From Isurus oxyrinchus (Eukaryota), in assembly GCA_026770705.1 (NCBI GenBank), contig JANJGN010001184.1, positions 124,001-177,742 of the forward strand: a DNA stretch of 53,742 bases, written 5' to 3'. Under the pieces are notes generated by a model. It saw nothing but the letters and a program-made list of their open reading frames with translations, made no database searches and was not told the DNA's origin. Position numbers and translations under genes: made by a program. Of this stretch, positions 6,256 through 51,189 are shown piece by piece; positions within the stretch are counted from its first letter, which is position 1, and every line of letters begins with the position of its first letter.

Positions 6256-6260
6256 GGTTT

Positions 6261-29071: not shown

Positions 29072-29244
29072 GTAAGTATGGACATCCTTCATTCTACGTT
29101 AGCTGGAATAGTATAAAATGTGCACAGCAAGCTCCCACATACTGCATTTTGTTGACCAACAAACCATTGGTCTTTAACTGGTAAAAGGTGACTCCTGACA
29201 GGCAGTACATCCTTAATACTGACTCTCCGACAGTGCATCATGGA

Positions 29245-30980: not shown

Positions 30981-30983
30981 GTT

Positions 30984-32964
30984 TTATATCTTGAGTCTAT
31001 GAGTTCACTGGTTGAGTAAACTCGAATTGCACTCCTTCATATACACTTGTTAGTTGATGCTCGCTATCAATAACCAAGAGAGACCGACATTAGAACAAGC
31101 TGATTATTTATTGCAAGAGGGCAGAGCACTAAATTGTTGCATGTTCCCACACCCACCTCCAGCTCTAGACTTACAGTTAACCAGTAGCCCGCACTGTACA
31201 ATGATTGGACAGCACTGTCACATGGTTTATCCACTTGTATTCTCTTAACTGTACAAGGAACTCCACTTTACCACATCCTTCCCCCTTTACTTAAAAAGTG
31301 CAGTTGACAAACTTAATAACAAGTGAACTAATTACACTAATAACTATTTACAAATCAAGTCTCTCAGGAGGCTTTCTCGAATGTTGCTCCTTCCAAATTT
31401 TGGGACCTGTCCTCTACATGTGGCCCAGACTCAAGTGGAGATGAAGACTTCATTTCTTCTTGTGGGACCAGCGTTATTTTGGGGAAATGATCCACGTGTC
31501 GTTTACTGATACATGAGAGGAGAGGGATCCAGTTACTGCACTCACCTCGCCTAACAGCCAATTGGACCCATCTCCATAGTTCATCGCGAGGACTGCACCT
31601 CCCACAGTGAAAGTTCTTTCCCAGCATGACCATCGTGCCTGGTCTCCTGCGTCTCTTGGCTTTTCTCCAGCCTCCCCTTTAAATCCGGCTGGATAAGGGT
31701 CAGGTGGGTGCGGAGATGTCTCTTCATTAGTAGTTCTGCAGGGCCAATGCTGGTCGTTGTTTGTGGCCTGGCCCAGTTTGTGAAGAGGAACCGGGACAAT
31801 CTCATGCCGATGGAATCCCCTTCCATCTTTCTCACCCTGGATTTAAAGGTTTGGATGCCCTGCTCAGCCCTGCCGTTCGATGCTGGGCGGTAGGGTGAGG
31901 GTTTGATATGGGTGATGAAGTGCTGAATAGTAACTGAGGGCTGTGGTCTCAGGTGGTTTGGAACAATTTTCATTCACTGGTTGAAAGTCTTCGAGTCGGG
32001 GATGGTCGGTGACGTGAGGCTGAGGATCAGCCCGGACGTTTTGCTCCCACATGTGGATACAAGAATCTCCCTCTTCTTCTCCTCTCCCGTGATATCATTA
32101 GCGGTAAAAAAAGAACACTAGGCGTTCGACACACTGAGACCAGTCACCTGAAATGGGGTTGAATGGATCGACACGCCGGAACTGCAGCATCGTCGACGAC
32201 TGCAAGGGGGCAGCACTTCCGATGTCTTCCCAGTTAATGTCCAATTCAGGTGTTTGTCTTACTGCAGCATCCTTCACTGCCGTCGATTGATTCATCTTTT
32301 ACCTTCCGCAGAGTTACCCGCTCTCTGGGGTCTCTTATAACATTCTGTCCACAGCCATTGTCCTTGCATGTACCTCTTTAAATGTATTGTTGCTTTAAGA
32401 GCAGTCACCTCTTTGTTAACTCCCTCTCTGTCGCTCTTGTCTTTTCTGTGCTGGGTTTCGTGCTCTCTTTGAGTTTTGCTGGGATCCCTGTGATCAGGAT
32501 TCTGCAGGGTTTTTCCCCCAAATTCTCAGTGCAGCACTGCTTCCTGCTCGGACTGCAGCCTATTTTACACCCTCCGTACAGATTCTCTTTCTAATGCTCT
32601 GCGCACTGGCCTTGTGGGTCCTCACTCAGGGGCTGTGTTTTTAGCTGTGTTCATCCTCACCCCCAGTTTTATGTCTTGAGTCTCTGAATTCACCAGTCGA
32701 GTAAACTCGAATTGCACACCTTCATATACACTCGCTAGTTGATTCTTACTATCAGTAACGGACAGAGACAGACATAAGAACAAACTGTGATTATTTATTG
32801 CAGCAGAGGACTGAACACTGAATCCTTGCGCACCCCCACAACCACCTCCAGCTCGAGAAATACAGTTACCCAGTAGCCCAACCTGTCCTATGATTGGTCA
32901 GTACTGTCACATGGTTAGTCCGCTTGCATTCTCTTAAAGGTACATGGTGCTCCACTTGACCATA
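30984..32964 (-). mobile_element. Internally deleted Gypsy-type LTR retrotransposon with two LTRs
   Basis: Direct LTRs. PPT AAAGGGGGAAGGA-TG (- strand, about 31276-31288). PBS-like ACTGGGGGTGAGGATGA near 32650-32668. Gag remnant DPFNP..DWSQCVERL.FFF and integrase remnant SPYRPASNGRAEQ..TFK. Confidence 0.85.
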
Positions 32965-33317
32965 GAGGGCCTGAAGTATACAGCCAACAGTGTGTTTGCC
33001 TCAGTACTGACCCACCCACAGGGCAGCACTCCCTCATTACTGGCTCTCTAACAGTGCAATGCTCCCTCAGTACTGTCCCTCCCACATTGCAGTTCTCAAT
33101 CAGAACTGACAGTCTGACTGTGCAGCACTCCATCAGCACTGCATCTGCTACAGTGCAGCTCTCCCTCAGCACTCTCTCAGTGCTGAACTGAAGTGTCTGC
33201 CTGGATTATGTGCTTTGTGGTGAAGGAACCTTCATTGATGTCACACCTTTCACATTCTCAAAGTCTCTCAAAGTGCTTCACAGTCAATGTAAGCAACTGA
33301 TCTTTATTTGTTTTCAG

Positions 33318-33599
33318 ACGCACCACAGAATCTCTCAATTGCTTCTCTTGATACGATTAACGCTTCATTGATCAATATAATTGAGGGGAATTCTGCAGTG
33401 ATAATCTGCTCTGTCGAGAGCTTCCCAGCTTCTAACCTGACGTGGCGACATCTTAATGTCCCAATGAACAGAACAAGTTCCAACAATGAGCTGTGGTTGG
33501 TGATTCCTCACGTTACATCCAGGGACACTGGAGACTATCAGTGTGTGGCAGAGAATGAACATGGAGCAGTGGAGGGGTTCCTAACAATTACTGTGGAAC
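33318..33599 (+). CDS. Gene D, second C2/I-set exon
   Basis: ttttcag acceptor, C|gtgagt donor, 282 nt open, paralog of 7197-7478. Confidence 0.9.
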
Positions 33600-33607
33600 G
33601 TGAGTTA

Positions 33608-33974
33608 NNNNNNNNNNNNNNNNNNNNNNNNNNNNNNNNNNNNNNNNNNNNNNNNNNNNNNNNNNNNNNNNNNNNNNNNNNNNNNNNNNNNNNNNNNNNN
33701 NNNNNNNNNNNNNNNNNNNNNNNNNNNNNNNNNNNNNNNNNNNNNNNNNNNNNNNNNNNNNNNNNNNNNNNNNNNNNNNNNNNNNNNNNNNNNNNNNNNN
33801 NNNNNNNNNNNNNNNNNNNNNNNNNNNNNNNNNNNNNNNNNNNNNNNNNNNNNNNNNNNNNNNNNNNNNNNNNNNNNNNNNNNNNNNNNNNNNNNNNNNN
33901 NNNNNNNNNNNNNNNNNNNNNNNNNNNNNNNNNNNNNNNNNNNNNNNNNNNNNNNNNNNNNNNNNNNNNNNNNN
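33608..33974. other. Assembly gap (N run)
   Basis: Run of Ns. Confidence 1.
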
Positions 33975-34070
33975 AGACTAGGCACTTTACAGATGGAGAG
34001 GAGGGAGGAAGAGATACATCGGAGCATCATTCCAAACCTGTAGTGCAGTAATTCATGGCTGTTTTTACAG

Positions 34071-34167
34071 GTAGAGACTCCAGTAAATGGACAGTAGGAT
34101 TGTTCACGGCTGGGATCATGTTGAGTGTTTTACTGGCTGAAATCTTCATCTTCATCTGTGTGAGAAA
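34071..34167 (+). CDS. TM exon of the inhibitory-type receptor (probably gene D), phase 1-2
   Basis: tttttacag acceptor, AA|gtaagt donor. RRDSSKWTVGLFTAGIMLSVLLAEIFIFICVRK: hydrophobic span plus basic stop-transfer residues. Confidence 0.8.
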
Positions 34168-34329
34168 GTAAGTCTGAAGATTTAACTTGATTTTAATATA
34201 AACATTTGTTTAGGACTAATTGGACAGTTTTTACAAAGGGCCAGCACAGGCACGATGGGCTGAGTGGCTTCCTCCAGAGCTGTGAGATTTTAAATTCTTA
34301 CATCGAATGTGACTGTCACTGATGAGGCC

Positions 34330-34760
34330 GCTATTAATATGCCATCTCTAATTGCCCTTGAGAAGGTGTTGGTGAGCTGCCTTCTTGACCCACTGCAGTC
34401 CATGTGGTGTAGGTACACCCACAGTGCTGTTAGAGAGGGAGTTCCAGGAGTTTGACCCAGCGACAGTGAAGGAACGGTGATATATTTCCAAGTCAGGATG
34501 GTGAGTGACTTGGAGGGGAACTTCCAGGTGGTGGTGTTCCCATGTGTCTGCTGCCCTTGTCCTTCTAGATGGTAGAGGTCGTGGGTTTGGAAGGTGCTGT
34601 TGAAGGAGCCTTGCTGAGTTGCTGCAGTGCATCTTGTAGATGGTACACACACTGCTGCCACTGTGTGTTCATGGTGGAGGGAGTGAATGTTTAATGTGGT
34701 GGATGGGGTGTCGATCAATCGGGCTGCTTTGTCCTGGATGGTGTCAAGCTTCTTGATTCT
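34330..34760 (-). mobile_element. CR1-clade LINE 3' fragment repeated in each cassette (about 37260, 40300, 43415, 46465)
   Basis: CTIYKMHCSNS.RLLQQHLPNP..SWNSL..KAAHHHLLKGN; the same family is on the + strand at about 50750-51150. Confidence 0.8.
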
Positions 34761-34888
34761 GTGCTTTGTGCAGATGTAATTTAATGAGACAGTCCAGTTG
34801 TCGGTGTAAGGTTACAGTGGGCTCTGTGTCTGTGCTGCACTGACTCTCTGCTATATGATAACCACAGTGTGATATTGTGTTATTGCAG

Positions 34889-34970
34889 GAGAAAGACAGC
34901 GATGGAGGAGAGAGTTTCAGGGACCAGTGACATTGCATTGACCCCCCGTTCACTCTCTGTGAATCACCAG
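34889..34970 (+). CDS. Cytoplasmic linker exon, cassette 1 (phase 2-0)
   Basis: ttgcag acceptor, CAG|gtacag donor, 82 nt. RKTAMEERVSGTSDIALTPRSLSVNHQ, in frame with the TM exon and the terminal exon. Confidence 0.78.
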
Positions 34971-35105
34971 GTACAGGAGCTGTTTACACTCACTCCAAAG
35001 TTTCAATCTCAGTGTGTAGACAACACGTGTCCCAGATTCCCAGCCCAGTTACCCACTGATTTGTACCTGTGGAGTCAGCAATGGTTTAGTATCATGCTGT
35101 CTCTC

Positions 35106-35859
35106 TGTTATGACACAGCAACTGGTAAAGGCTGTTGTTTAAAATCCCAGAGGGAAACTTTAAACAACTGTCATAACCTATATTTCCCAGTGGAATATTT
35201 GAGATGCAGCTCTAAATTCAAGAATAGGACCACCAGTTCTCGAGATGGTTTTATATCAATCTACATGAGACATTTATTAATTAACACAAGTTAAACATAT
35301 GCACATGGCTACAAGCTAGCATTATCATAACATTTTAACAAATTCCCAAACTAATCTCCTCTAAGATAACCCGTAGACTTTCAGCAGATTCCAGGCAAAG
35401 CATTTTCACCTCACAAATTCCAAATGAGGTTCCTTTCACTTTGGTTCCTTTGCAGACAGGTGTAGGCTTACAGCTGCTTTGATGTTACAAGCCTCTGCTC
35501 TGCACACACAAAACTGCTCAAGTTATACCCAGTGCTTCTCTTTGAATGTAAATTCTCATTGTATCATCAGGACCATTGAACTCCATCTCTTCCAACAATA
35601 AATCCTCTGTCATAGTATCAATTTTATTAATAAAATAAATGTTGATTGGTTTAAGATTTCACTCTCAGGTTTTGAATGCTCTGTTTAAAAATACAAATTT
35701 TTATCTCTCAGTTTACATCTCAAAACTACTATACATCAAATACCCAGACTGGCTGGCTTTAATCCAGTTAAAACACACACAGACACACCCACAGACTAAA
35801 CCCCGATGTGAATAAAAATAATTTCCAATAACATGATATTTATTAATCGCATCATGACA
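35106..35859. mobile_element. Solo LTR-like element repeated in each cassette (also 38037-38970, 41076-42009, 44192-45125, 47244-48177)
   Basis: TGTTATGA...TCATAACA/TCATGACA termini flanked by a ctctc-like duplication. Confidence 0.68.
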
Positions 35860-36400
35860 GTCTCTCTCTCTATCCCAACCTCCCTTTCTTCCTCTCTCTC
35901 TCTTTCTCTCTCTCTCATCCTCTCTCTGATTACAAGGTGCATGTTAATGAGCTTCACACCAGACACTTGAGTGCAGAATCCAACTGTCACTCACCAGAGC
36001 CATTACCGAGGGAGTGCAAGACTGACAGAGGGTCAGTACTGAGGGAGTGCTGCACTGTCGGAGGGTCAGTACTGAGGGAGAGCTGCACTGTCGGAGTGTC
36101 AGTACTGAGGGAGCGCTGCACTGTCGGAGGGTCAGTACTGAGGGAGCGCTGCACTGTCGGAGGGTCAGTAATGAGGGAGCGCTGCACTGTCGGAGGGTCA
36201 GTACTGAGGGAGTGCTGCACTGTCGGAGGGTCAGTCCTGAGGGAGCGTTGCACTGCCATAGGTGGTATCTTTCATATGACATGAGAGAGAGGGTTAAACC
36301 AACTGAGACACGACTGACATTAACAAGGCTGCACAATAATTTAACCCTATCAGTGCCAGTAAATGATGTGAGGATAACTTCTGTTTCGATTTCTCTGTAG

Positions 36401-36649
36401 GGTAAACAGAACGTGCTGATTACTGAGCCCCAGAACACAAAGAGAGACGCAACTGGCGAGGGGGAGACCCCAGCTCCCCGGGGTCTCTCTGAAGATGCAG
36501 TGGGAGGCGATGCTGGACATGGGAACCCCGACAAACCTGAAGAGTTTCTCTACGCCAATCCCCAAGTCTTGAGGATGTCCAGTGGTGATGGGTCTGTCCA
36601 CAGGGAAGAGGAGACGGAATACGCACAGATCAGGTTCGAGCATAACTGA
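36401..36649 (+). CDS. Terminal cytoplasmic exon, cassette 1 (FLYANP + ITSM TEYAQI)
   Basis: ctgtag acceptor, phase 0. GKQNVLITEP...EEFLYANPQV...EETEYAQIRFEHN*. Confidence 0.82.
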   Translation, partial: GKQNVLITEPQNTKRDATGEGETPAPRGLSEDAVGGDAGHGNPDKPEEFLYANPQVLRMSSGDGSVHREEETEYAQIRFEHN

Positions 36650-36845
36650 ATGAGAAATGGGGAGAGTGAGTGAGGAGGTATCAGGGTGGGGGTAGTGATT
36701 GAGATTCCTGGGAACAGGAAACAACCCACTGGGGGAGAGGGGGGAGAGGGAGGAAGGGATGGAATTGGGCTGCGGTTGGTGTGGTTTGGAATGAAATGCT
36801 TCTCCAGAGAGGACTGGATGCTGAGCCATTGGGGATAGAGATTCA

Positions 36846-36881
<36 letters not shown>

Positions 36882-37819
36882 GTCCCTCTCTCTCTCTCTC
36901 TCCCTGTCTCTGTCTTTCTTTCTGTGTCTGTCTCTCATTCCCTATCTCCAGCTCCTCCTTTAAGATGCCCGTTAATAACTGACTTTGTTGACTCAGCTGT
37001 TGGTCTCCTGTCCCTAATATCTCCTCATGTGGAGTCAGGTGAAGATGTCACTAACAAGCCCCGGATGAGCCTTGGGACATTTTGCTACATTGAAGGTGCT
37101 ATATAAATGCAAGTAGTTGTAGTGACTCTGATCTGCTTCGATTAACAATGGAACCACAAAGGCTCCTTCGACAGGGCGTGTGTGCAGCAGGGTCACAGTA
37201 AATACATTGAGATGTGAGATTTTTAATTCTTTCATCGAATGTGGCTGTCACTGGTGATGTCAGCGTTAATGCCCATCCCTAATTGCCCTTGAGAAGGTGG
37301 TGGTGAGCTGCCTCCTTGACCCGCTGCAGTCCATGTGGTGTAGGTACACCCACACTGCTGTTAGAGAGGTAGCTCCAGGTGTTTGACCCAGCGACAGTGA
37401 AGGAACGGTGATATATTTCCAAGTCAGGATGGTGAGTGACTTGGAGGGGAACTTCCAGGTGGTGGTGTTCCCATGTGTCTGCTGCCCTTGTCCTTCTAGA
37501 TGGTAGAGGTCGTGGGTTTGGAAGGTGCTGTTGAAGGAGCCTTTCCGAGTTGCTGCAGTGCATCTTGTAGATGGTACACACACTGCTGCCACTGTGTGTT
37601 CGTGGTGGAGGGAGTGAATGTTTAATGTGGGGGATGGGGTGTAGATCAATCGGGCTGCTTTGTCCTGGATGGTGTCAAGCTTCTTGATTCTGTGCTTTGT
37701 GCAGAGGTGATTTAAAGAGACAGTCCAGTCGTTGGTGTAAGGTTTCAGTGGGCTCTGTGTCTGTGCTGCACTGACTCTCTGCTATATGATAACCACAGTG
37801 TGATATTGTGTTATTGCAG

Positions 37820-37901
37820 GAGAAAGACAGCGATGGAGGAGAGAGTTTCAGGGACCAGTGACATTGCATTGACCCCCAGTCCACTCTCTGTGAAGCACCA
37901 G
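37820..37901 (+). CDS. Cytoplasmic linker exon, cassette 2
   Basis: Intact copy with ag/gt sites and open frame. Confidence 0.65.
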
Positions 37902-39431
37902 GTACAGGAGCTGTTTACACTCACTCCAAAGCTTCAATCTCAGTGTGTAGACAACACATGTCCCAGATTCCCAGCCCAGTTACCCACTGATTTGTACCTG
38001 TGGAGTCAGCAATGGTTCAGTATCATGCAGTCTCTCTGTTATGACACAGCAACTGGTAAAGGCTGTTGTTTAAAATCCCAGAGGGAAACTTTAAACAACT
38101 GTCATAACCTATATTTCCCAGTGGAATGTTTGAGATGCAGCTCTAAATTCAGGAATAAGACCACCAGTTCTTGAGATGGTTTTATATCAAACTACTTGAG
38201 ACATTTATTAATTTACACAAGTTAAACATATGCACATGGCTACAAACTAGTATTATCATAAATTTTTAACAAATTCTCAAACTAATCTCCTCTAAGACAA
38301 CCCATTGTCTTTAAGCAGACACCCAGGCAAAGCATTTTCACCTCACAAATTCCAAATGAGGTTCCTTTCACTTTGGTTCCTTTGCAGACAAGTATAGGCT
38401 TACCGCTGCTTTGCTGTTACAAGCGTCTGCTCTGCACACACAAAACTGCTCAAGTTATACCCAGCTCTTGAGTTTAAAGAAGACGGAGATTGATACGCTC
38501 TTGATTGGTCAGGGGATCAAAGGTTAGGGGAGAAGGTGGGAGAATGGGGTTTGTGAAACATATCAGCCATGTATGAATGGTGGAGCAGACTCGATGGACC
38601 GAATGGTCTAATTTCTCCTCCTATGTCTTATGGTCTTATGGCTTCTGTTTGAAGGTAAATTCGTAATGTATCATCAGGACCTTTGAACTCCATCTCTTCC
38701 AATAATAAATCCCCTTTCATCGTATCAATTTTATTAGTAATATAAACGTTGATTGGTTTAAGATTTCACTCTCAGACTTTGAATGTTTTATTTAAAAATG
38801 CAAATTACCACTTTACCTCTTTGTTTACATCTCAAAACTACTATACATCAAAGCACACAGACTGGCTGTCTTTAATCCAATTAAAATACACACAGACACA
38901 CACACAGACTAAACCTCTGTTTAAAAAGACAGTTTGCAATTACAATACAAAAATTAATAGATTAATAACACTCTGTCTCTATCCCTCCTCTATCCCTCTC
39001 TCTCATCCTCTCTCTGATTACAAGGTTCATGTTATTGAGCCTCACACCGGGCACCTGTGTGCAGCATCCAAGCCGGCACTCACCAGAGCCATTACCGATT
39101 GAGTGCGAGACTGACAGAGGCTCAGTACTGAGGGAGTGCTGCACTGTTGGAGGGTCAGTACTGAGGGTGTGCTTCACTGTCGGAGGGACAGTACTGAGGG
39201 AATGTTGAACTGTCGGAGGGTCAGTACTGAGGGAGCGCTGTATTGTCGGAGGGTCAGCACTGAGGGAGTGCTGCACTGTTGGAGGGTCAGTACTGAGGGA
39301 GTGCTGCACTGCCATAGGTGGTTTCTTTTATCCGATAGGAGAGAGAGAATTAAACGAGTCTGCACAATAATTTAACCCTATCAGTAACAGTAATTGATGT
39401 GAGGATGTCTTCTGTTTCCATTTCTCTGTAG

Positions 39432-39680
39432 GGTAAACAGAACGTGCTGATTACTGAGCCCCAGAACACAACCAGAGATACAACTAGTGAGGGGGAGACC
39501 CCAGCTCCCCGGGGTCTCTCTGAAGGTCCAGTGGGAGGCGATGTTGGACATGGGAACCCCGACAAACCTGAAGAGTTTCTCTACGCCAATCCCCAAGTCT
39601 TGAGGATGTCCAGTGGTGATGGGTCTGTCCACAGGGAAGAGGAGACGGAATACGCACAGATCAGGTTCGAGCATAACTGA
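39432..39680 (+). CDS. Terminal cytoplasmic exon, cassette 2 (FLYANP + TEYAQI)
   Basis: Intact acceptor and open frame to TGA. Confidence 0.68.
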   Translation, partial: GKQNVLITEPQNTTRDTTSEGETPAPRGLSEGPVGGDVGHGNPDKPEEFLYANPQVLRMSSGDGSVHREEETEYAQIRFEHN

Positions 39681-39905
39681 ATGAGAAATGGGGAGAGTGA
39701 GTGAAGAGGTATCAGGGTGGGGGTAGTGATTGAGATTCCTGGGAACAGGAAACAACCCACTGGGGGAGAGGGAGAGAGAGGGAGGAAGGGATGGAATTAG
39801 GCTGCGGTTGGTGTGGTTTGGAATGAAATGCTTCTCCAGAAAGGACTCAGTCCTTTCTGGAGAAGCATTTCATTTCACTGTCTCTCTCTCTCTCTCTCTC
39901 TCTCC

Positions 39906-39936
<31 letters not shown>

Positions 39937-40858
39937 CCTGTCTCTGTCTTTCTTTCTGTGTCTGTCTCTCATTCCCTATCTCCAGCTCCTCCTTTAAGAT
40001 GCCCGTTAATAACTGACTTTGTTGACTCAGCTGTTGGTCTCCTGTCCCTAATATCTCCTCATTTGCCTCAGAGTCAGGTGAAGATGTCACTAACAATCCC
40101 CGGATGAGCCTTGGGACGTTTTGCTACATTGAAGGTGCTATATAAATGCAAGTAGTTGTAGTAACTCTGATCTGCTTCGATTAACAATGGAACCACAAAG
40201 GCTCCTTCGACAGGGCGTGTGTGCAGCAGGATCACAGTAAATACATTGAGCTGTGAGATTTTTAATTCTTTCATCGAATGTGGCTGTCACTGGTGACGTC
40301 AGCGTTAATGCCCATCCCTAATTGCCCTTGAGAAGGTGGTGGTGAGCTGCCTTCTTGACCCACTGCGGTCCATGTGGTGTAGGTACACCCAAAGTGCTGT
40401 TAGAGAGGGAGTTCCAGGATTCTGACCCAGCGACAGTGAAGGAACGGTGATATATTTCCAAGTCAGGATGGTGAGTGACTTGGAGGGGAACTTCCAGGTG
40501 GTGGTGTTCCCATGTGTCTGCTGCCCTTGTCATTCTAGATGGTAGAGGTCGTGGGTTTGGAAGGTGCTGTTGAAGGAGCCTTGCTGAGTTGCTGCAGTGC
40601 ATCTTGTAGATGGTACACACACTGCTGCCACTGTGTGTTCGTGGTGAAGGGAGTGAATGTTTAATGTGGTGGATGGGGTGTCGATCAATCGGGCTGCTTT
40701 GTCCTGGATGGTGTCAAGCTTCTTGATTCTGTGCTTTGTGCAGAACTGATTTAAAGAGACAGTCCAGTCGTTGGTGTAAGGTTACAGTGGGCTCTGTGTC
40801 TGTGCTGCACTGACTCTCTGCTATATGATAACCACAGTGTGATATTGTGTTATTGCAG

Positions 40859-40940
40859 GAGAAAGACAGCGATGGAGGAGAGAGTTTCAGGGACCAGTGA
40901 CATTGCATTGACCCCCAGTCCACTCTCTGTGAATCACCAG
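40859..40940 (+). CDS. Cytoplasmic linker exon, cassette 3
   Basis: Intact copy. Confidence 0.65.
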
Positions 40941-42539
40941 GTACAGGAGCTGTTTACACTCACTCCAAAGCTTCTATCTCAGTGTGTAGACAACACATGT
41001 CCCAGATTCCCAGCCCAGTTACCCACTGATTTGTACCTGTGGAGTCAGCAATGGTTCAGTATCATGCAGTCTCTCTGTTATGACACAGCAACTGGTAAAG
41101 GCTGTTGTTTAAAATCCCAGAGGGAAACTTTAAACAACTGTCATAACCTATATTTCCCAGTGGAATGTTTGAGATGCATCTCTAAATTCAGGAATAAGAC
41201 CACCAGTTCTTGAGATGGTTTTATATCAAACTACTTGAGACATTTATTAATTTACACAAGTTAAACATATGCACATGGCTACAAACTAGTATTATCATAA
41301 ATTTTTAACAAATTCTCAAACTAATCTCCTCTAAGACAACCCATTGTCTTTAAGTAGACACCCAGGCAAAGCATTTTCACCTCACAAATTCCAAATGAGG
41401 TTCCTTTCACTTTGGTTCCTTTGCAGACAGGTGTAGGCTTACAGCTGCTTTGATGTTACAAGCCTCTGCTCTGCACACACAAAACTGCTCAAGTTATACC
41501 CAGCTCTTGAGTGTAAAGAAGACGGAGATTGATACGCTCTTGATTGGTCAGGGGATCAAAGGTTAGGAGAGAAGGTTGGAGAATTGGGTTTGTGAAACAT
41601 ATCAGCCATGTATGAATGGTGGAGCAGACTCGATGGACCGAATGGTCTAATTTCTCCTCCTATGTCTTATGGTCTTATGGCTTCTGTTTGAAGGTAAATT
41701 CGCAATGTATCATCAGGACCTTTGAACTCCATCTCTTCCAATAATAAATCCCCTTTCATCGTATCAATTTTATTAGTAATATAAACGTTGATTGGTTTAA
41801 GATTTCACTCTCAGACTTTGAATGTTTTATTTAAAAATGCAAATTACCACTTTACCTCTTTGTTTACATCTCAAAACTACTATACATCAAAGCACACAGA
41901 CTGGCTGGCTTTAATCCAATTTAAATACACACAGACACACACACAGACTAAACCTCTGTTTAAAAAGACAGTTTGCAATTACATTACATACATTAATAGA
42001 TTCATAACACTCTGTCTCTGTCCCTTCATCTCTATCTCTCTCTCTCATCCTCTCTCTGATTACAAGGATCATGTTATTGAGCCTCACACCAGGCACCTGA
42101 GTGCAGAATCCAAGCCGTCACTCACCAGAGCCATTACCGATTGAGTGCGAGGCTGACAGAGGGTCAGTACTGAGGGAGTGCTGCACTGTTGGAGGGTCAG
42201 TACTGAGGGAGTGCTGCACTGACGGAGGGTCAGTACTGAGGGAGTGCTGCACTGTTGGAGGGTCAGTACTGAGGGAGTGCTGCACTGACAGAGGGTCAGT
42301 ACTGAGGGAGTGCTGCACTGTCGATGGGTCAGTACTGAGGGAGCGCTGTATTGTCGGAGGGTCAGCACTGAGGGAGTGCTGCACTGTTGGAGGGTCAGTA
42401 CTGAGGGAGTGCTGCACTGCCATAGGTGGTTTCTTTTATCCGATAGGAGAGAGAGAATTAAATGAGTCAGCACAATAATTTAACCCTATCAGTAACAGTA
42501 ATTGATGTGAGGATGTCTTCTGTTTCCATTTCTCTGTAG

Positions 42540-42788
42540 GGTAAACAGAACGTGCTGATTACTGAGCCCCAGAACACAACCAGAGACACAACTAGTGAGG
42601 GGGAGACCCCAGCTCCCCGGGGTCTCTCTGAAGATGCAGTGGGAGGCGATGTTGGACATGGGAACGCCGACAAACCTGAAGAGTTTCTCTACGCCAATCC
42701 CCAAGTCTTGAGGATGTCCAGTGGTGATGGGTCTGTCCACAGGGAAGAGGAGACGGAATACGCACAGATCAGGTTCGAGCATAACTGA
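42540..42788 (+). CDS. Terminal cytoplasmic exon, cassette 3 (FLYANP + TEYAQI)
   Basis: Intact acceptor and open frame. Confidence 0.68.
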   Translation, partial: GKQNVLITEPQNTTRDTTSEGETPAPRGLSEDAVGGDVGHGNADKPEEFLYANPQVLRMSSGDGSVHREEETEYAQIRFEHN

Positions 42789-42985
42789 ATGAGAAATGGG
42801 GAGAGTGAGTGAAGAGGTATGGGGTTGGGGGTAGGGATTGAGATTCCTGGGAACAGGAAGCAACCCACTGGGGGAGAGGGGGAGCGAGGGAGGAAGGGAT
42901 GGAATTGGGCTGCGGTTGGTGTGGTTTGGAATGAAATGCTTCTCCAGAGAGGACTGGATGCTGAGCCATTGGGGATAGAGATTCA

Positions 42986-43019
<34 letters not shown>

Positions 43020-43974
43020 GGCTCTCTCCCTCTCTCTCTCTCTCTCTCCCTCCCTCTCTCTGTCTTTCTTTCTGTGTCTGTCTCTCATTCTCTATCTCCA
43101 GCTCCTCCTTTAAGATGCCCGTTAATAACTGACTTTGTTGACTCAGCTGTTGGTCTCCTGTCCCTAATATCTCCTCATGTGCCTCAAAGTCAGGTGAAGA
43201 TGTCACTAACAAGCCCCGGATGAGCCTTTGCACATTTTGCTACATTGAAGGTGCTATATAAATGCAAGTAGTTGTAGTAACTCTGATCTGCTTCGATTAA
43301 CAATGGAACCACAAAGGCTCCTTCAACAGGGCGTGTGTGCAGGAGGGTCACAATAAATACATTGAGCTGTGAGATTTTTAATTCTTTCATCGAATGTGGC
43401 TGTCACTGGTGATGTCAGCGTTAATGCCCATCCCTAATTGCCCTTGAGAACGTGGTGGTGAGCTGCCTTCTTGACCCGCTGCAGTCCATGTGGTGTAGGT
43501 ACACCCACAGTGCTGTTAGAGAGGGAGTTCCAGGAGTTTGACCCTGCGACAGTGAAGGAACGGTGATATATTTCCAAGTCAGGATGGTGAGTGACTTGGA
43601 GGGGAACTTCCAGGTGGTGGTGTTCCCATGTGTCTGCTGCCCTTGTCCTTCTAGATGGTAGAGGTCGTGGGTTTGGAAGGTGCTGTCGAAGGAGCCTTGC
43701 TGAGTTGCTGCAGTGCATCTTGTAGATGGTACACACACTGCTGCCACTGTGTGTTCATGGTGGAGGGAGTGAATGTTTAATGTGGGGGATGGGGTGTAGA
43801 TCAATCGGGCTGCTTTGTCCTGGATGGTGTCAAGCTTCTTGATTCTGTGCTTTGTGCAGAACTGATTTAAAGAGACAGTCCAGTTGTTGGTGTAAGGTTA
43901 CAGTGGGCTCTGTGTCTGTGCTGCACTGACTCTCTGCTATATGATAACCACAGTGTGATATTGTGTTATTTCAG

Positions 43975-44056
43975 GAGAAAGACAGCGATGGAGGAGAGAG
44001 TTTCAGGGACCAGTGACATTGCATTGACCCCCAGTCCACTCTCTGTGAAGCACCAG
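43975..44056 (+). CDS. Cytoplasmic linker exon, cassette 4
   Basis: Intact copy with tttcag acceptor. Confidence 0.65.
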
Positions 44057-45589
44057 GTACAGGAGCTGTTTACACTCACTCCAAAGCTTCAATCTCAGTG
44101 TGTAGACAACACATGTCCCAGATTCCCAGCCCAGTTACCCACTGATTTGTACCTGTGGAGTCAGCAATGGTTCAGTATCATGCTGTCTCTCTGTTATGAC
44201 ACAGCAACTGGTAAAGGCTGTTGTTTAAAATCCCAGAGGGAAACTTTAAACAACTGTCATAACCTATATTTCCCAGTGGAATGTTTGAGATGCATCTCTA
44301 AATTCAGGAATAAGACCACCAGTTCTTGAGATGGTTTTATATCAAACTACTTGAGATATTTATTAATTTACACAAGTTAAACATATGCACATGGCTACAA
44401 ACTAGTATTATCATAAATTTTTAACAAATTCTCAAACTAATCTCCTCTAAGACAACCCATTGTCTTTAAGCAGACACCCCGGCAAAGCATTTTCACCTCA
44501 CAAATTCCAAATGAGGTTCCTTTCACTTTGGTTTTTTTGCAGACAGGTGTAGGCTTACAGCTGCTTTGATGTTACAAGCGTCTGCTCTGCACACACAAAA
44601 CTGCTCAAGTTATACCCAGCTCTTGAGTGTAAAGAAGACGGAGATTGATACGCTCTTGATTGGTCAGGGGATCAAAGGTTAGGAGAGAAGGTTGGAGAAT
44701 TGGGTTTGTGAAACATATCAGCCATGTATGAATGGTGGAGCAGACTCGATGGACCGAATGGTCTAATTTCTCCTCCTATGTCTTATGGTCTTATGGCTTC
44801 TGTTTGAAGGTAAATTCGCAATGTATCATCAGGACCTTTGAACTCCATCTCTTCCAATAATAAATCCCCGTTCATCGTATCAATTTTATTAGTAATATAA
44901 ACGTTGATTGGTTTAAGATTTCACTTTCAGGCATTTAATGTTTTATTTACAAATGCAAATTACCACTTTACCTCTTTGTTTACATCTCAAAACTACTATA
45001 CATCAAAGCACACAGACTGGCTGGCTTTAATCCAATTAAAATACACACAGGCACACACACAGACTAAACCTCTGTTTAAAAAGACAGTTTGCAATTACAT
45101 TACATACATTAATAGATTCATAACACTCTGTCTCTGTTCTTTCATCTCTATCTCTCTCTCTAATCCTCTCTCTGATTACAAGGTTCATGTTATTGAGCCT
45201 CACACCAGGCACCTGTGTGCAGCATCCAAGCCGTCACTCACCAGAGCCATTACCGATTGAGTGCGAGACTGACAGAGGGTCAGTACTGAGGGAGTGCTGC
45301 ACTGTTGGAGGGTCAGTACTGAGGGAGTGCTGCACTGACAGAGGGTCAGTACTGAGGGAGTGCTGCACTGTCGTTGGGTCAGTACTGAGGGAGCGCTGTA
45401 TTGTCAGAGGGTCAGGACTGAGGGAGTGCTGCACTGTTGGAGGGTCAGTACTGAGGGAGTGCTGTACTGCCATTGGTGGTTTCTTTTATCCGATAGGAGA
45501 GAGAGAATTAAATGAGTCTGCACAATAATTTAACCCTATCAGTAACAGTAATTGATGTGAGGATGTCTTCTGTTTCCATTTCTCTGTAG

Positions 45590-45838
45590 GGTAAACAGAA
45601 CGTGCTGATTACTGAGCCCCAGAACACAACCAGAGACACAACTATTGAGGGGGAGACCCCAGCTCCCCGGGGTCTCTCTAAAGGTCCAGTGGGAGGCGAT
45701 GTTGGACATGGGAACCCCGACAAACCTGAAGAGTTTCTCTACGCCAATCCCCAAGTCTTGAGGATGTCCAGTGGTGATGGGTCTGTCCACAGGGAAGAGG
45801 AGACGGAATACGCACAGATCAGGTTCGAGCATAACTGA
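45590..45838 (+). CDS. Terminal cytoplasmic exon, cassette 4 (FLYANP + TEYAQI)
   Basis: Intact acceptor and open frame. Confidence 0.68.
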   Translation, partial: GKQNVLITEPQNTTRDTTIEGETPAPRGLSKGPVGGDVGHGNPDKPEEFLYANPQVLRMSSGDGSVHREEETEYAQIRFEHN

Positions 45839-46035
45839 ATGAGAAATGGGGAGAGTGAGTGAGTAGCTATGGGGTTGGGGGTAGGGATTGAGATTCCTGG
45901 GAACAGGAAGCAACCCACTGGGGGAGAGGGGGAGAGAGGGAGGAAGGGATGGAATTGGGCTGCGGTTGGTGTGGTTTGGAATGAAATGCTTCTCCAGAGA
46001 GGACTGGATGCTGAGCCATTGGGGATAGAGATTCA

Positions 46036-46070
<35 letters not shown>

Positions 46071-47026
46071 GCTCTGTCCCTCTCTCTCTCTCTCTCTCTC
46101 CCTCCCTCTCTCTGTCTTTCTTTCTGTGTCTGTCTCTCATTCTCTATCTCCAGCTCCTCCTTTAAGATGCCCGTTAATAACTGACTTTGTTGACTCAGCT
46201 GTTGGTCTCCTGTCCCTAATATCTCCTCATGTGCCTCAGAGTCAGGTGAAGATGTCACTAACAAGCCCCGGATGAGCCTTTGCACATTTTGCTACATTGA
46301 AGGTGCTATATAAATGCAAGTAGTTGTAGTAACTCTGATCTGCTTCGATTAACAATGGAACCACAAAGGCTCCTTCAACAGGGCGTGTGTGCAGCAGGGT
46401 CACAATAAATACATTGAGCTGTGAGATTTTTAATTCTTTCATCGAATGTGGCTGTCACTGGTGATGTCAGCGTTAATGCCCATCCCTAATTGCCCTTGAG
46501 AAGGTGGTGGTGAGCTGCCTTCTTGACCCGCTGCAGTCCATGTGGCGTAGGTACACCCACAGTGCTGTTAGAGAGGGAGTTCCAGGAGTTTGACCCAGCG
46601 ACAGTGAAGGAACGGTGATATATTTCCAAGTCAGGATGGTGAGTGACTTGGAGGGGAACTTCCAGGTGGTGGTGTTCCCATGTGTCTGCTGCTCTTGTCC
46701 TTCTAGATGATAGAGGTCGTGGGTTTGGAAGGTGCTGTTGAAGGATCCTTGCTGAGTTGCTGCAGTGCATCTTGTAGATGGTACACACACTGCTTCCACT
46801 GTGTGTTCGTGGTGGAGGGAGTGAATGTTTAATGTGGTGGATGGGGTGTAGATCAATCGGGCTGCTTTGTTGTGGATGGTGTCAAGCTTCTTGATTCTGT
46901 GCTTTGTGCAGAAGTGATTTAAAGAGACAGTCCAGTTGTCGGTGTAAGGTTTCAGTGGGCTCTGTGTCTGTGCTGCACTGACTCTCTGCTATATGATAAC
47001 AACAGTGTGATATTGTGTTATTGCAG

Positions 47027-47108
47027 GAGAAAGACAGCGATGGAGGAGAGAGTTTCAGGGACCAGTGACATTGCATTGACCCCCAGTTCACTCTCTGTGA
47101 AGCACCAG
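47027..47108 (+). CDS. Cytoplasmic linker exon, cassette 5
   Basis: Intact copy. Confidence 0.68.
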
Positions 47109-48641
47109 GTACAGGAACTGTTTACACTCACTCCAAAGCTTCAATCTCAGTGTGTAGACAACACATGTCCCAGATTCCCAGCCCAGTTACCCACTGATTT
47201 GTACCTGTGGAGTCAGCAATGGTTCAGTATCATGCAGTCTCTCTGTTATGACACAGCAACTGGTAAAGGCTGTTGTTTAAAATCCCAGAGGGAAACTTTA
47301 AACAACTGTCATAACCTATATTTCCCAGTGGAATGTTTGAGATGCAGCTCTAAATTCAGGAATAAGACCACCAGTTCTTGAGATGGTTTTATATCAAACT
47401 ACTTGAGATATTTATTAATTTACACAAGTTAAACATATGCACATGGCTACAAACTAGTATTATCATAAATTTTTAACAAATTCTCAAACTAATCTCCTCT
47501 AAGACAACCCATTGTCTTTAAGCAGACACCCCGGCAAAGCATTTTCACCTCACAAATTCCAAATGAGGTTCCTTTCACTTTGGTTTTTTTGCAGACAGGT
47601 GTAGGCTTACAGCTGCTTTGATGTTACAAGCGTCTGCTCTGCACACACAAAACTGCTCAAGTTATACCCAGCTCTTGAGTGTAAAGAAGACGGAGATTGA
47701 TACGCTCTTGATTGGTCAGGGGATCAAAGGTTAGGAGAGAAGGTTGGAGAATTGGGTTTGTGAAACATATCAGCCATGTATGAATGGTGGAGCAGACTCG
47801 ATGGACCGAATGGTCTAATTTCTCCTCCTATGTCTTATGGTCTTATGGCTTCTGTTTGAAGGTAAATTCGCAATGTATCATCAGGACCTTTGAACTCCAT
47901 CTCTTCCAATAATAAATCCCCGTTCATCGTATCAATTTTATTAGTAATATAAACGTTGATTGGTTTAAGATTTCACTTTCAGGCATTTAATGTTTTATTT
48001 ACAAATGCAAATTACCACTTTACCTCTTTGTTTACATCTCAAAACTACTATACATCAAAGCACACAGACTGGCTGGCTTTAATCCAATTAAAATACACAC
48101 AGGCACACACACAGACTAAACCTCTGTTTAAAAAGACAGTTTGCAATTACATTACATACATTAATAGATTCATAACACTCTGTCTCTGTTCTTTCATCTC
48201 TATCTCTCTCTCTAATCCTCTCTCTGATTACAAGGTTCATGTTATTGAGCCTCACACCAGGCACCTGTGTGCAGCATCCAAGCCGTCACTCACCAGAGCC
48301 ATTACCGATTGAGTGCGAGACTGACAGAGGGTCAGTACTGAGGGAGTGCTGCACTGTTGGAGGGTCAGTACTGAGGGAGTGCTGCACTGACAGAGGGTCA
48401 GTACTGAGGGAGTGCTGCACTGTCGTTGGGTCAGTACTGAGGGAGCGCTGTATTGTCAGAGGGTCAGGACTGAGGGAGTGCTGCACTGTTGGAGGGTCAG
48501 TACTGAGGGAGTGCTGTACTGCCATTGGTGGTTTCTTTTATCCGATAGGAGAGAGAGAATTAAATGAGTCTGCACAATAATTTAACCCTATCAGTAACAG
48601 TAATTGATGTGAGGATGTCTTCTGTTTCCATTTCTCTGTAG

Positions 48642-48890
48642 GATGAACAGAACGTGCTGATTACTGAGCCCCAGAACACAAAGAGAGACGCAACTAGCGA
48701 GGGGGAGACCCCAGCTCCCCGGGGTCTCTCTGAAGATGCAGTGGGAGGCGATGTTGGACATGGGAACCCCGACAAACCAGACGAGCTTTTCTACGCCAAC
48801 ATCAACTTTTCAAAGCTGCCCAGCGGTGACAGGACTGTGCACAGGAGCGAGGACACGGAATACACACAGATCAGGTTCCAGAAAAACTGA
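48642..48890 (+). CDS. Terminal cytoplasmic exon, cassette 5 (canonical ITIM LFYANI + ITSM TEYTQI)
   Basis: DEQNVLITEP...DELFYANINFSKL...EDTEYTQIRFQKN*. Same arrangement as CD33 LHYASL/TEYSEV. Confidence 0.82.
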   Translation, partial: DEQNVLITEPQNTKRDATSEGETPAPRGLSEDAVGGDVGHGNPDKPDELFYANINFSKLPSGDRTVHRSEDTEYTQIRFQKN

Positions 48891-49083
48891 GTGTGAAACA
48901 GGGAGCGGGGCTGTGGGGTGTGTGCAGCCAACATGGCCAAATAGTAATGAACACAAATATGATGTTGCTCAACTTTTTTTATTGATTCTGAGTGAGCTTT
49001 CTGAATGCTGCACCTTTTTCCATGCTGTAAAAGATTGTGAGAAGCTTATGTATTATGTATAATTTTACTTCTGTTAATACAAG

Positions 49084-51189
49084 GTGAGGTGAGAGTGACT
49101 GCCTTTGACATCAAGGCTGCATTTGACCGAGTGTGGCATCTAGGATCCCGAGCAAAACTGGAGTCAATGGGAATCAGGGGTGGTACGAAATTATAATAAT
49201 TTGCATAATATTTTCCTGGTTTGTTGTAAACTAGGTTTATGGGTGTGAGTGTAGATGTGTCTGTCTGTGTGGTTTAATTACATCTGGAGTCAGGTAGACT
49301 GCAAGTTTGAGATTATCAGAAGAAGCTAGGTGTAGAAATGTACTTGAAATGCTAATGAGTGAACATAGAGGCTTTCTTTGCATGTGAGGTGAGAAAGGGA
49401 ATTTGCATTTTTAGATAAGTGACGTGATTGTTTGGATTTCAAAGGGCTGTTGGTCTGTTTACAACGAGGCCGATATGCAAGGCAAAGGAGTGTGTTTATT
49501 TTTCCCACAGGTTATTGACAACATTGGCAACATGAAAGTTTTTATATTATGGGAAAAGTATAATTCCCAAGACATTTGGAACAATGAAATTTACATATCA
49601 AAGAGAGAGAAACATCAACAAAGGAGAATGAAAGGCTATTTTGGGGACCATGTAAAATCTAACAAGAGTGTGTGAATCAGCCTTGAAGAAGCCTCCAGGC
49701 ATTTGTCCATAGGTCTGTTATGTTCAGTGACTGTCGTTCGAGAAAGCCATTTGGAAATCCACTCTCAAGTGTGTTTTGTGTTAACTTGCTGGTTTTGTTT
49801 TTAAATCTGAAATCTATTTTGGTTTATTGCCTAAAAGGAGTTTTACTGCTCACTTCCAGACTTCCCAATGCCTGACCACCATCTTCAAGGTTAATTAGGA
49901 AGTTTAGGATTTGTTATAGTAGTAACCGTATCCTTATGTGTGCGCTTTAAATCTTAAATAAATATTAAAATTTAATTTTTAAGATCTCTAAATGTCTTGG
50001 TTGACACATTACTCCTGAATTCAGTGCACACATCTCATAATAAATACAAATTGCAAAACCGTTGTGATAGTGTGACCAAGTTTCCCTTGTGGATTTGGTC
50101 TCCTGGCACACATCATCTACCACATCATAACAGAGGGAAAACTCTCCACTGGTTGGAGCCATACCCAGCACAAAGGAAGATAGTTGTGGTTGTTGGAGGT
50201 CAATCATCTCAGTTCCAGGACATCACTGCAGGAGTTACTCAGGGTAGTGTCCAAGGCCCAACCACCTTCAGCTGCTTCATCAATGACCTTCCTTCCATCA
50301 TAAGGACAGAAGTGTGGATGTTCACTGATGATTGCACAATGTTCAGCACCATTCACGACTCCTCAGATACTGAAGCAGTCCTTGTCCAAATGCAGCAAGA
50401 CCTGGACAATATCCAGACTTGGGCTGACAAGTGTCAGGCAATGACCATCTGCATAAGAGAGAATCTAACTATCGCTCCTTGATGTTCAATGACATTACCA
50501 CTGCTGAATACCCCACTATCAACATCCTGGTGGTTACCATTGACCAGAAATTGTACTGGACCAGCCATAAAAATACTGTGGTTTCAAGAGCAGGTCAGAG
50601 GCTGGGAATCATGCAGTGAGTAACTCACTCCAGACTCCCCAAAACCTGTCCACCGTCTTCAAGGCACAGGTCAGGAGTGTGATGGAAGACTCTCCACTTG
50701 CCTGGATGAGTGCAGCTCCAACAAGATTCAATAAATTCAACACCACTCAGGACAAAGCAGCCCCACTAGTTCAGCTCCCCATCCACAAACATTCACTCTC
50801 TGCACAACCGACACACAGTAGCAGCAGTGTGTACCATCTACAAGGTGCACTGCAGGAACTCACCAAAACTCCTTAGGCAGCACCTTCAAACACACGACCA
50901 CTACCATCTCAAAGTACAGGTCAGCAGATACATGGTAACACCACCACCTGGAAGTTACCCTCCAAGTCACTCACTATCCTGACTTGGAAATATATCGGCC
51001 GTTCCTTCACAGTCACTGCGTCCTAATTCTGGAACTCCCTCCCTAACAGCATTGTGGGTGTACCTACACCACATGGACTGCAACAGTTCAAGAAGGCAGC
51101 TCATTACCATATTCTCAAGGGCAATTAGGGATGGGCAATAATTCTGGCCTCGCCAGTTCCGTCCACATCCCATAAATGAATATAAAAAA
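49084..51189 (+). mobile_element. 5'-truncated CR1-clade LINE interrupted by a solo LTR (49181-50132)
   Basis: FDIKAAFDRVWH, then AGVTQGSVQGP..FINDLP..MFTDDCT, an A-rich tail and flanking acaag repeats. Confidence 0.85.

Follow-up and report, generated by a model that had tools for sequence, protein, structure and literature searches.

The window, a 53,742-nt stretch of DNA from the shark Isurus oxyrinchus, contains a gene that is, as judged from its sequence, a CD33-type Siglec of a lamniform shark. The features of the gene are listed in Table 1; the exons were translated and searched singly. Its predicted ectodomain begins with a V-set exon, and the translation of this exon contains the Siglec-type arginine context YFFRIEF. 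Together with the Pfam matches, this corresponds to the V-set domain with a strand-F arginine that characterizes Siglecs, and sialic-acid binding is predicted. A C2-set Ig domain, a third Ig domain, and a single transmembrane (TM) exon follow, as in Siglecs. The third Ig exon is 96.6% identical to models of the great white shark (Carcharodon carcharias). The TM exon is hydrophobic and is 93.5% identical to the TM of the great white models P0023 and P0030. An earlier note on this DNA had described one TM exon with a phase-2 donor, and tblastn found no second copy in the window. The window also holds paired activating and inhibitory family members whose heads are near-identical. Hidden copies of tail exons for two genes of the window, A and B, were looked for by tblastn and none was found; both genes own a separate TM exon.

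Table 1. Features of the Siglec gene and its tandem array (positions in the window)
Feature	Position	Strand	Basis or remark
V-set (CD22-like first Ig) exon, within open stretch	27069-27539	+	Pfam V-set 1.8e-11, Ig_CD22 2.4e-09
C2-set Ig exon, within open stretch	28723-29100	+	Pfam C2-set_2 3.1e-09
Third Ig exon, within open stretch	33293-33604	+	Pfam Ig_3 2e-12, I-set 3.1e-10
Run of N between third Ig exon and TM exon	33608-33974	.	Seen in sequence
TM exon, 97 nt, phase 1 in, phase 2 out	34071-34167	+	Donor AAA/GTAAGT
Tandem array, 4.8 units of ~3.05 kb	34277-48905	+	Self-comparison of sequence, copies as assembled
Unit U1	34277-37208
Unit U2	37209-40247
Unit U3	40248-43363
Unit U4	43364-46415
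Unit U5	46416-48905
Linker exon 1, 82 nt, phase 2 to 0	34889-34970	+
Linker exon 2, 82 nt, phase 2 to 0	37820-37901	+
Linker exon 3, 82 nt, phase 2 to 0	40859-40940	+
Linker exon 4, 82 nt, phase 2 to 0	43975-44056	+
Linker exon 5, 82 nt, phase 2 to 0	47027-47108	+	RNA depth peak, joints entering and leaving
Type A tail exon 1, internal form 233 nt, phase 0 to 2	36401-36633	+	Donor GT 36634; read-through stop ends 36649
Type A tail exon 2, internal form	39432-39664	+	Donor GT 39665; read-through stop ends 39680
Type A tail exon 3, internal form	42540-42772	+	Donor GT 42773; read-through stop ends 42788
Type A tail exon 4, internal form	45590-45822	+	Donor GT 45823; read-through stop ends 45838; RNA joint to linker exon 5
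Type B tail exon 5, last coding exon (LFYANI, TEYTQI, stop)	48642-48890	+	RNA joint from linker exon 5, motifs
3' untranslated region start, after cassette 5	48891-49300	+	RNA depth high to end of stretch covered

Downstream of the TM exon lies a tandem array whose units are 91-98% identical, far beyond chance. The last unit is cut off at 48905, directly after its stop, and a 33-nt satellite is present in 7.1, 6.1, 7.9, 6.1, and 6.1 copies in U1 to U5. Each unit provides one cassette, consisting of a linker exon and a 249-nt open tail exon. The five linker exons of the earlier note are all present, with AG acceptors and CAG/GTACAG donors, and the residues it gave as specific to single cassettes (PRS/PSP/PSS, VNH/VKH) are correct. 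The five tail exons have polypyrimidine-AG acceptors and are open to a TGA. Their description as terminal exons, however, does not simply apply to tail exons 1-4, which carry an internal donor. The tail exons of cassettes 1-4 are referred to as type A and that of cassette 5 as type B.

The internal donor, CAG/GTTCGA, is located at nt 234 of the exon, 16 nt before the stop, and is identical in all four type A exons. It is a weak donor, with T at +3 and C at +4. At the same site, cassette 5 reads CAG/GTTCCA, without the +5 G. A linker exon and a type A tail exon up to the internal donor add up to 82 + 233 = 315 nt, which is divisible by three. The phases run 2, 0, 2 through each of the four type A modules, as is seen in in-frame repeats. 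With this length and phase 2 at either end, one cassette can follow another without loss of frame. Any linker also joins any tail exon in frame, and the phases thereby bear out another point of the earlier note.

Each type A module encodes 105 residues with two tyrosine motifs, YAN (a Grb2-type YxN) and TEYAQI (ITSM or ITIM-like, YxxPhi). The first motif reads YANP, and since FLYANP fails the ITIM pattern, cassettes 1-4 have no canonical ITIM. Cassette 5, in contrast, carries the canonical ITIM LFYANI together with the ITSM-like TEYTQI, which is the combination of a cytoplasmic ITIM with a distal ITIM-like or ITSM motif found in Siglecs. No Pfam family matched the tail exons. The mammalian CD33-related Siglecs (CD33, Siglec-7, and Siglec-9) likewise have a V-set head with YFFRxE, then C2-set domains and one TM, and their tails carry a membrane-proximal ITIM (LxYAxI/L) and a distal TEYxx(I/V). 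Cassette 5 has exactly such a pair. The mammalian tails carry a single motif pair, whereas the shark array has up to four extra 105-residue modules before it. These modules come from repeated exon pairs and contain YAN and TEYAQI with no canonical ITIM.

Splicing of the array was followed in sequencing runs compared as contigs at a likeness of at least 90% over cassettes 4-5 to position 49300. The runs were X15 (RNA-like, organism A), X17 (organism B), and the DNA runs X1 and X8. A GT..AG joint from 45822 to 47027, which connects nt 233 of tail A to the start of a linker, is present on a contig in X15 and in X17, and is absent from the DNA runs X1 and X8. The shorter side of this key joint has 27-33 letters only. 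X15 contigs also join 47108 to 48642 (linker to tail B), and the linker-to-tail-A join is seen in X15 as a go-back joint and as loose ends reading GTAAACAGAACGTGCTG. Depth in X15 relative to X1 is 2-5 for exon bins, compared with 0.006-0.08 for introns. These observations apply at the family level because paralogous tail exons in the genome also align, and the contigs with the 45822 to 47027 joint may derive from paralogues. At 45621, the letter carried by 98% of the X15 depth does not occur in any cassette of the window, and the same is true of 14 of the 39 listed differences. In the tail exon, EPQNT is proper to this locus, as opposed to EPRNT/EPRDT. Use of the donor of tail exon 1 would follow from its identity in sequence to the RNA-supported donor of cassette 4.

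Serial joining of modules is also found in related sharks. In RefSeq models of Carcharodon carcharias and Cetorhinus maximus, two modules are linked at exactly the predicted junction (…TEYAQIR/RKTAMEER…); the cassette counts for the great white and the basking shark are those of protein models. The closest available relatives are the "myelin-associated glycoprotein-like" models XP_041037215-221 and XP_041037155 of Carcharodon carcharias. They have in common with the Isurus oxyrinchus gene an unusual TM (…SVLLAEIFIFICV…), the motif block of type A (EEFLYANPQVLRMSSGDGSVHREEETEYAQI), the ending of type B, and the serial joining of modules. The closest of them (XP_041037215/216/221 and XP_041037155), with 93.5% identity in the TM and 96.6% in the third Ig domain, read linker-A-linker-B. 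They differ from the Isurus oxyrinchus array in having one type A module instead of four. They also have two more Ig domains before the TM; in the window, the run of N occupies that place and these domains are not seen. For the closest great white gene, which has a single module of each type, there are also isoform models that skip modules. Among the isoforms are A followed by B, B alone (spliced from the TM to linker 2 or from linker 1 to tail B), and A alone, with a frameshifted stub at its end. Module skipping and the out-of-frame A-to-B splice in these models suggest that splicing in the shark array may be noisy. The isoforms give some support to the earlier idea that different tails are placed on one ectodomain; the difference arises by skipping in a serial array.

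We consider it probable that the five cassettes form a serial module array that is spliced in sequence into a longer tail, rather than five alternative endings. Cassettes 1-4 are most likely internal exon pairs and cassette 5 the true end. According to this model, the last two coding exons of a CD33-type Siglec, the 82-nt linker and the tail exon, would have been duplicated in tandem. The latent 5' splice site CAG/GTTCGA before the stop would have become usable once a linker acceptor stood downstream, and each linker and tail pair would continue in frame into the next. Cassettes 1-4 would each add a module with YAN and TEYAQI sites, and cassette 5 would provide the canonical ITIM, TEYTQI, the stop, and the 3' UTR. 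Because skipping a whole module would not disturb the frame, minor or regulated mRNAs with fewer modules are to be expected. We infer that the main mRNA of the Isurus oxyrinchus locus carries all four type A modules, and that the extra modules would increase the phosphotyrosine docking sites and alter the strength or quality of the signal.

Starting from an ancestral pair of cassettes, A followed by B like that of the great white, the array would have grown through unequal crossovers inside the tail exon. In their upstream part, units 2-4 match U5 at 98-121 of 121 informative sites, and from about nt 138 of the tail exon onward they match U1 at 33 of 33 sites. U2-U4 are thus hybrids of U1 and U5, as unequal crossing-over would produce. 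The expansion is young: U2-U5 are just 2-4.5% apart, and no difference separates U4 from U5 over a stretch of ~1.2 kb.

The youth of the units would also suit a recent, largely neutral expansion in copy number, in which the working mRNA contains one A and one B module, or B alone, and the extra cassettes are mostly skipped or aberrant. The module skipping in the great white isoform models points the same way. The "many substitutions" of the earlier note are relative: the linker and tail exons of cassettes 1-4 have 15 variable sites in 331 nt, and all of these lie outside the 3' half of the tail exon. Almost every difference that separates the exons of two cassettes replaces a residue, and no purifying selection is visible at the protein level. 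The test for stop avoidance across units was not significant, nor was the avoidance of indels in exons (0 of 17, with 1.8 expected). Variability in the linker exon is not reduced relative to its flanks (3/82 vs 27/600, p = 1). The tail exon, however, varies less than its 300-nt flanks (12/249 vs 74/529, p = 7e-5), and its 3' half forms the longest run without any variation among units 1-4 (146 nt of 2848). This run covers both tyrosine motifs, the donor, and 40 nt past the donor, and so the motif-plus-donor half is the most conserved stretch of the unit. Outside this motif half, protein-level constraint finds no support in the exon differences. Moreover, none of the four type A cassettes has lost a splice site, a polypyrimidine tract, the reading frame, or either tyrosine motif, and exons that are identical and have identical sites would tend to be included under exon definition. 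The U4-specific letters 45645 T and 45680 A are almost missing in the RNA contigs, which would fit a skipped cassette, but contigs drop rare variants and the missing letters carry little weight. On balance, a neutral expansion with mostly unused cassettes appears unlikely.

The choice among five alternative last exons proposed in the earlier note, in which each cassette would end its own mRNA and give one tail per ectodomain, was unsupported and is very unlikely. An in-frame stop is present in every tail exon, any linker-tail pair is in frame, and the paralogues P0002, P0013, P0014, and P0016 of great white and basking sharks end in exons that resemble type A. However, X15 depth falls about 50-fold, from 40805 within tail A to 810 in the next bin (45881-46007), within ~60 nt past the type A stop and with no sign of a 3' UTR. 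After tail B (bins 48675-49300), depth holds at 25000-43000. Tail exons of this type are also spliced onward, as seen in the RNA joint in two shark species and in the serial junctions of RefSeq models, in which A is joined to the next linker. A scan of the sequence found neither AATAAA nor ATTAAA for ~2 kb after the stops of U1 and U2, whereas AATAAA is present 564-566 nt past the stops of U3 and U4, leaving stops 1-4 free of the signal for 560-2000 nt. The scan gives an ambiguous picture, as even cassette 5 lacks AATAAA over 1067 nt. Neither depth nor signals assign a separate poly(A) site and 3' UTR to each exon, an indirect result in contigs that cannot show 3' ends. Of the two outcomes that define a composite internal/terminal exon, use of the donor is seen in RNA, and no read-through end was seen at this locus; in paralogues, exons like type A do come last.

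A stacking of paralogous or allelic copies by the assembler, with fewer true cassettes, is highly improbable: the ~1.2 kb of perfect identity between U4 and U5, the best DNA run containing only 0.60 of sampled words, and the spread of the great white Siglec cluster over small scaffolds, a sign that the region is hard to assemble, speak for it, but the units are 2-9% apart (far more than alleles) with unit-specific mosaics, indels, and satellite counts, the hybrid pattern of U2-U4 is orderly, contigs of X15, X17, and X8 bridge the unit boundary 46415/46416, and both U1-type and U2-5-type letters are present in the DNA of organisms A and B.

The serial array has partial counterparts in known systems. 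In the C-mu-4 exon of the immunoglobulin heavy chain (secreted vs membrane), a 5' splice site likewise lies inside an exon, upstream of an in-frame stop. In both cases, the protein continues downstream when the donor is used and ends at the stop when it is ignored. In the heavy chain, the donor competes under regulation with a poly(A) site close by, whereas no poly(A) use is seen after the type A exons; in addition, the downstream exons of the shark gene are copies of the same module. PECAM-1 and CD22 have exon-modular, alternatively spliced tails, in which tyrosine motifs lie on separate small exons and inclusion or skipping changes the motif set. Tandem exon duplication is a source of internal protein repeats. 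What differs in the shark gene is that the unit is an exon pair that includes the original last exon, internalized through a latent donor. The copies are also young (2-9% apart) and their number varies across related species (one type A in the great white models, four here). In the literature searched, no description of Siglec tail arrays in sharks was found; two-module forms are already in the RefSeq models, without comment.

Serial splicing of these modules would offer an immune receptor a simple route to lengthen and re-weight its signaling tail. Once the last two exons are duplicated, a latent donor just ahead of the stop can make an internal exon of what used to be the last. With a module length of 315 nt the frame is preserved, and a whole docking module is gained or lost at each unequal crossover. 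More speculatively, and with considerable doubt on our part, the number of type A modules could act as an adjustable dial. One to five ITSM/YxN docking units would then stand ahead of a single ITIM, through regulated skipping or through copy-number differences between individuals or species. If so, the same sialic-acid-binding head would be connected to a changed signal strength or to other SH2 partners (SHP-1/2, SAP-type adaptors, and Grb2). The Siglecs of lamniform sharks seem a naturally suited setting in which to ask how inhibitory signaling is tuned by the kind and number of tyrosine motifs. For annotation, the type A exons illustrate that a stop codon in an open "last exon" need not end the protein.

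The last gene of the window carries a tandem array (34277-48905) of 4.8 units of about 3.05 kb each, 91-98% identical, and every unit begins in a transposon-derived stretch. Phases were computed and the exons translated one by one. An earlier note had described a single transmembrane (TM) exon followed by five cassettes of a linker and a tail exon, and its coordinates, lengths, phases and cassette-specific residues all hold on this exon-by-exon reading. It had also taken the tail exons to be terminal. They are indeed open to TGA, but a donor inside the tail exons of cassettes 1-4 (type A) was missed. This donor, CAG/GTTCGA, is identical in all four type A exons, where its GT occupies exon nt 234-235, 16 nt ahead of the stop. 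At the same position, cassette 5 (type B) reads CAG/GTTCCA and has lost the G at +5. A tail exon that ends at nt 233 leaves phase 2, the phase required by the linker acceptor. Since 82 + 233 = 315 nt, or 105 codons, the cassettes can chain in frame. The TM exon encodes …GLFTAGIMLSVLLAEIFIFICVR, and no second copy of it was found by tblastn in the window.

Features of the window (a slash marks the exon-intron boundary)
Feature	Position	Strand	Remarks
Partial head copy	13937-16128		truncated V-set open stretch 14102-14413; C2-like stretches 14834-15175, 15659-16111
V-set exon, last gene	within 27069-27539	+	Pfam V-set 1.8e-11; CD22-like first Ig 2.4e-09
C2-set exon, last gene	within 28723-29100	+	
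Third Ig exon, last gene	within 33293-33604	+	
Run of N, last gene	33608-33974		
TM exon, single	34071-34167	+	acceptor phase 1; donor AAA/GTAAGT, phase 2
Linker exons (starts)	34889, 37820, 40859, 43975, 47027		82 nt; AG acceptor, donor CAG/GTACAG, phase 2 to 0
Tail exons (starts)	36401, 39432, 42540, 45590, 48642		249 nt, open to TGA
Internal donor GT, type A exons 1-4	36634, 39665, 42773, 45823		
33-nt satellite, one orientation	6663-7064, 10750-11419, 16219-16721, 23671-25387		
33-nt satellite, other orientation	36021-36255, 39110-39311, 42159-42419, 45268-45469, 48320-48521		

The two tail types carry different motifs. In type A (…EEFLYANPQVLRMSSGDGSVHREEETEYAQI…), FLYANP fails the ITIM pattern, YAN fits a Grb2-type YxN motif, and TEYAQI fits both ITSM and YxxPhi. 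Type B (…DELFYANINFSKLPSGDRTVHRSEDTEYTQIRFQKN) contains the canonical ITIM LFYANI and the distal motif TEYTQI, which together form the layout of CD33-related Siglecs. The types differ at 31 of the final 122 nt of the exon, and their units are 93-100% alike over the 1.3 kb 5' of the tail exon.

A search of sequencing runs gave DNA-like runs of organism A (best share 0.60) and of a relative, organism B (about 0.42), and for each organism small RNA-like runs as well. For organism A, the RNA-like run X15 and the DNA run X1, and for organism B, the RNA-like run X17 and the DNA run X8, were aligned at 90% likeness to 45500-49300. This stretch takes in tail exon 4, the boundary between units 4 and 5, linker 5, and tail exon 5 with the 400 nt that follow it. 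All runs consist of contigs, so that ends, strand and abundance are not readable from them. In exon bins X15 has 2-5 times the depth of X1, in introns 0.006-0.08 times; X15 thus behaves as RNA. Its depth is 56256 in the linker 5 bin and 434 and 696 in the flanking bins. A GT..AG joint from 45822 to 47027, connecting nt 233 of a type A exon with the first nt of a linker, is present in one X15 contig (depth 5054) and one X17 contig (depth 29) and is absent from both DNA runs, X1 and X8, over the aligned stretch. X15 also contains the GT..AG joint 47108 to 48642, from linker to tail B. Joining of linker to tail A appears in X15 as a go-back joint, 47108 to 45591, together with loose ends reading GTAAACAGAACGTGCTG behind 47109. 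The GT..AG joints in X15 and X17 therefore indicate onward splicing of type A tail exons in the RNA of both species. One further RNA-like X15 contig (depth 156) joins the linker donor at 47108 to 48236 with non-canonical GT..GG; it may come from a paralogue or be misplaced in the satellite-rich intron.

Paralogues also aligned. At 45621, 98% of X15 depth is G, and all five cassettes have A; G would encode EPRNT, as in many paralogous proteins, and the gene in the window encodes EPQNT. Among 39 listed differences within the array, 25 match another cassette of the window and 14 match none. These data show the junctions for this gene family in these sharks; for the locus in the window, we infer the same junctions because the splice-site sequences are identical.

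Protein models from two other sharks contain the same junction. When type A exon 2 (77 residues) was searched against 1.84 billion representatives, nine matches were returned, the top one with two matched stretches; the top and further matches are RefSeq models of Carcharodon carcharias (great white) and Cetorhinus maximus. Many models of these species have two modules, with the junction …TEYAQIR/RKTAMEER…, precisely what tail exon nt 1-233 followed by a linker would encode. Closest to the gene in the window come XP_041037215-221 and XP_041037155 of C. carcharias, named 'myelin-associated glycoprotein-like', with identities to the window of 93.5% (TM), 96.6% (third Ig), 88-90% (type A) and 86% (type B). 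Isoforms X1, X2 and X6 read linker-A-linker-B in series, X4 runs from TM to the second linker and B, X5 joins the first linker directly to B, and X3 splices A to B with no linker between them, which shifts the frame and leaves a six-residue stub at the end. The isoforms are predictions, and the annotators' RNA alignments in this sister species show support for serial use and module skipping. Models from non-lamniform sharks (Scyliorhinus, Hemiscyllium, Mustelus, Pristiophorus) contain just one module, which is type B-like; this makes type B the apparent ancestral form and type A an apparent lamniform novelty.

We consider it probable that the array is serial: cassettes 1-4 would be internal exon pairs, placing up to four 105-residue YxN + ITSM modules before a final ITIM + ITSM module, with some skipping. 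Duplication would have been followed by internalisation of the last exon via the latent donor, and type A modules would then be strung ahead of the type B end, some of them skipped. Tandem exon duplication, composite internal/terminal exons and exon-modular receptor tails are already known. What is new is their combination, in which a duplicated last exon internalised through a latent donor gives a shark Siglec a string of signalling modules that varies in copy number.

Among units 1-4, the longest invariant run is 146 of 2848 aligned nt; it comprises the 3' half of the tail exon, with the two tyrosine motifs and the donor, and extends 40 nt into the next intron. The tail exon is less variable than its 300-nt flanks (12/249 vs 74/529, p = 7e-5). 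In the same units, the variability of the linker exon is not below that of its flanks, and the lack of indels in exons is not significant. Visible constraint is thus confined to the motif and donor region. Nearly all exon differences between cassettes change residues. As for age, units 1 and 5 are 13-16% apart in the linker-to-tail intron, which makes their split old. Divergence among units 2-5 is only 2-4.5%, and units 4 and 5 share about 1.2 kb without a difference, which makes the expansion recent. Units 1 and 5 differ at 201 sites. At such sites in that intron, units 2-4 are unit 5-like at 98-121 of 121; between about tail-exon nt 138 and the point where homology ends, they are unit 1-like at 33 of 33, with the switch at exon nt 113-138. 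Hybrids of this kind are expected if an old A cassette and an old B cassette crossed over unequally and further rounds followed.

Of the alternatives to a serial array, the most probable, though still unlikely, is that the extra copies are young, neutral and mostly skipped. True alternative last exons, the use proposed in the earlier note, are very improbable: type A is spliced onward, and X15 depth falls from 40805 within tail exon 4 (45627-45753) to 810 in the first bin past it (45881-46007). The transcribed 3' region follows the type B exon only, with X15 depths of 25000-43000 in bins 48675-49300. An assembly over-count of cassettes is marginally less probable still, given the orderly mosaics, the indels specific to single units and the contigs of three runs that bridge the unit boundary at 46415/46416.

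Siglec-like genes form a cluster on the + strand of the window. In the last gene, the arginine of the V-set exon lies in the context YFFRIEF. The N run occupies the exact place where the closest great white models have two extra Ig domains between the third Ig and TM, so the ectodomain length is uncertain. Each of the two upstream Siglec-like genes has its own TM exon (9185-9328 and 22116-22301, +), in which an arginine falls within the membrane span (…ILHVILILGIRAVIFLVAVVITIAGV…), and a tail that is short and lacks tyrosine; a membrane arginine with such a tail is a hallmark of activating, adaptor-coupled partners. Over 4 kb, the head of the first gene, which is of the activating type (2338-6334; the V-set and C2 exons plus their introns), is 96.8% identical to that of the ITIM-tailed gene (27057-31058), far above the likeness of the remaining gene parts. 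This identity suggests gene conversion between paired receptors, as in human Siglec-5/14. The partial head copy that separates the second gene from the third is probably a fragment of a pseudogene.

A 33-nt satellite (unit like ACTGTCGGAGGGTCAGTACTGAGGGAGTGCTGC) occurs window-wide in both orientations, with up to 52 copies. It lies inside an intron of every cassette, and its copy numbers differ (7.1, 6.1, 7.9, 6.1 and 6.1 in units 1-5). Within or just past the 3' untranslated region of cassette 5 are reverse-transcriptase fragments (49041-50479; Pfam RVT_1 4.6e-08) and a repeat (48916-49083) common to 10261-10426 and 23188-23353. At the window end, 52891-53476 is a purine-rich 12-nt tandem array (GATGAGGAGGGG) of about 49 copies; its higher-order period is 225 nt.
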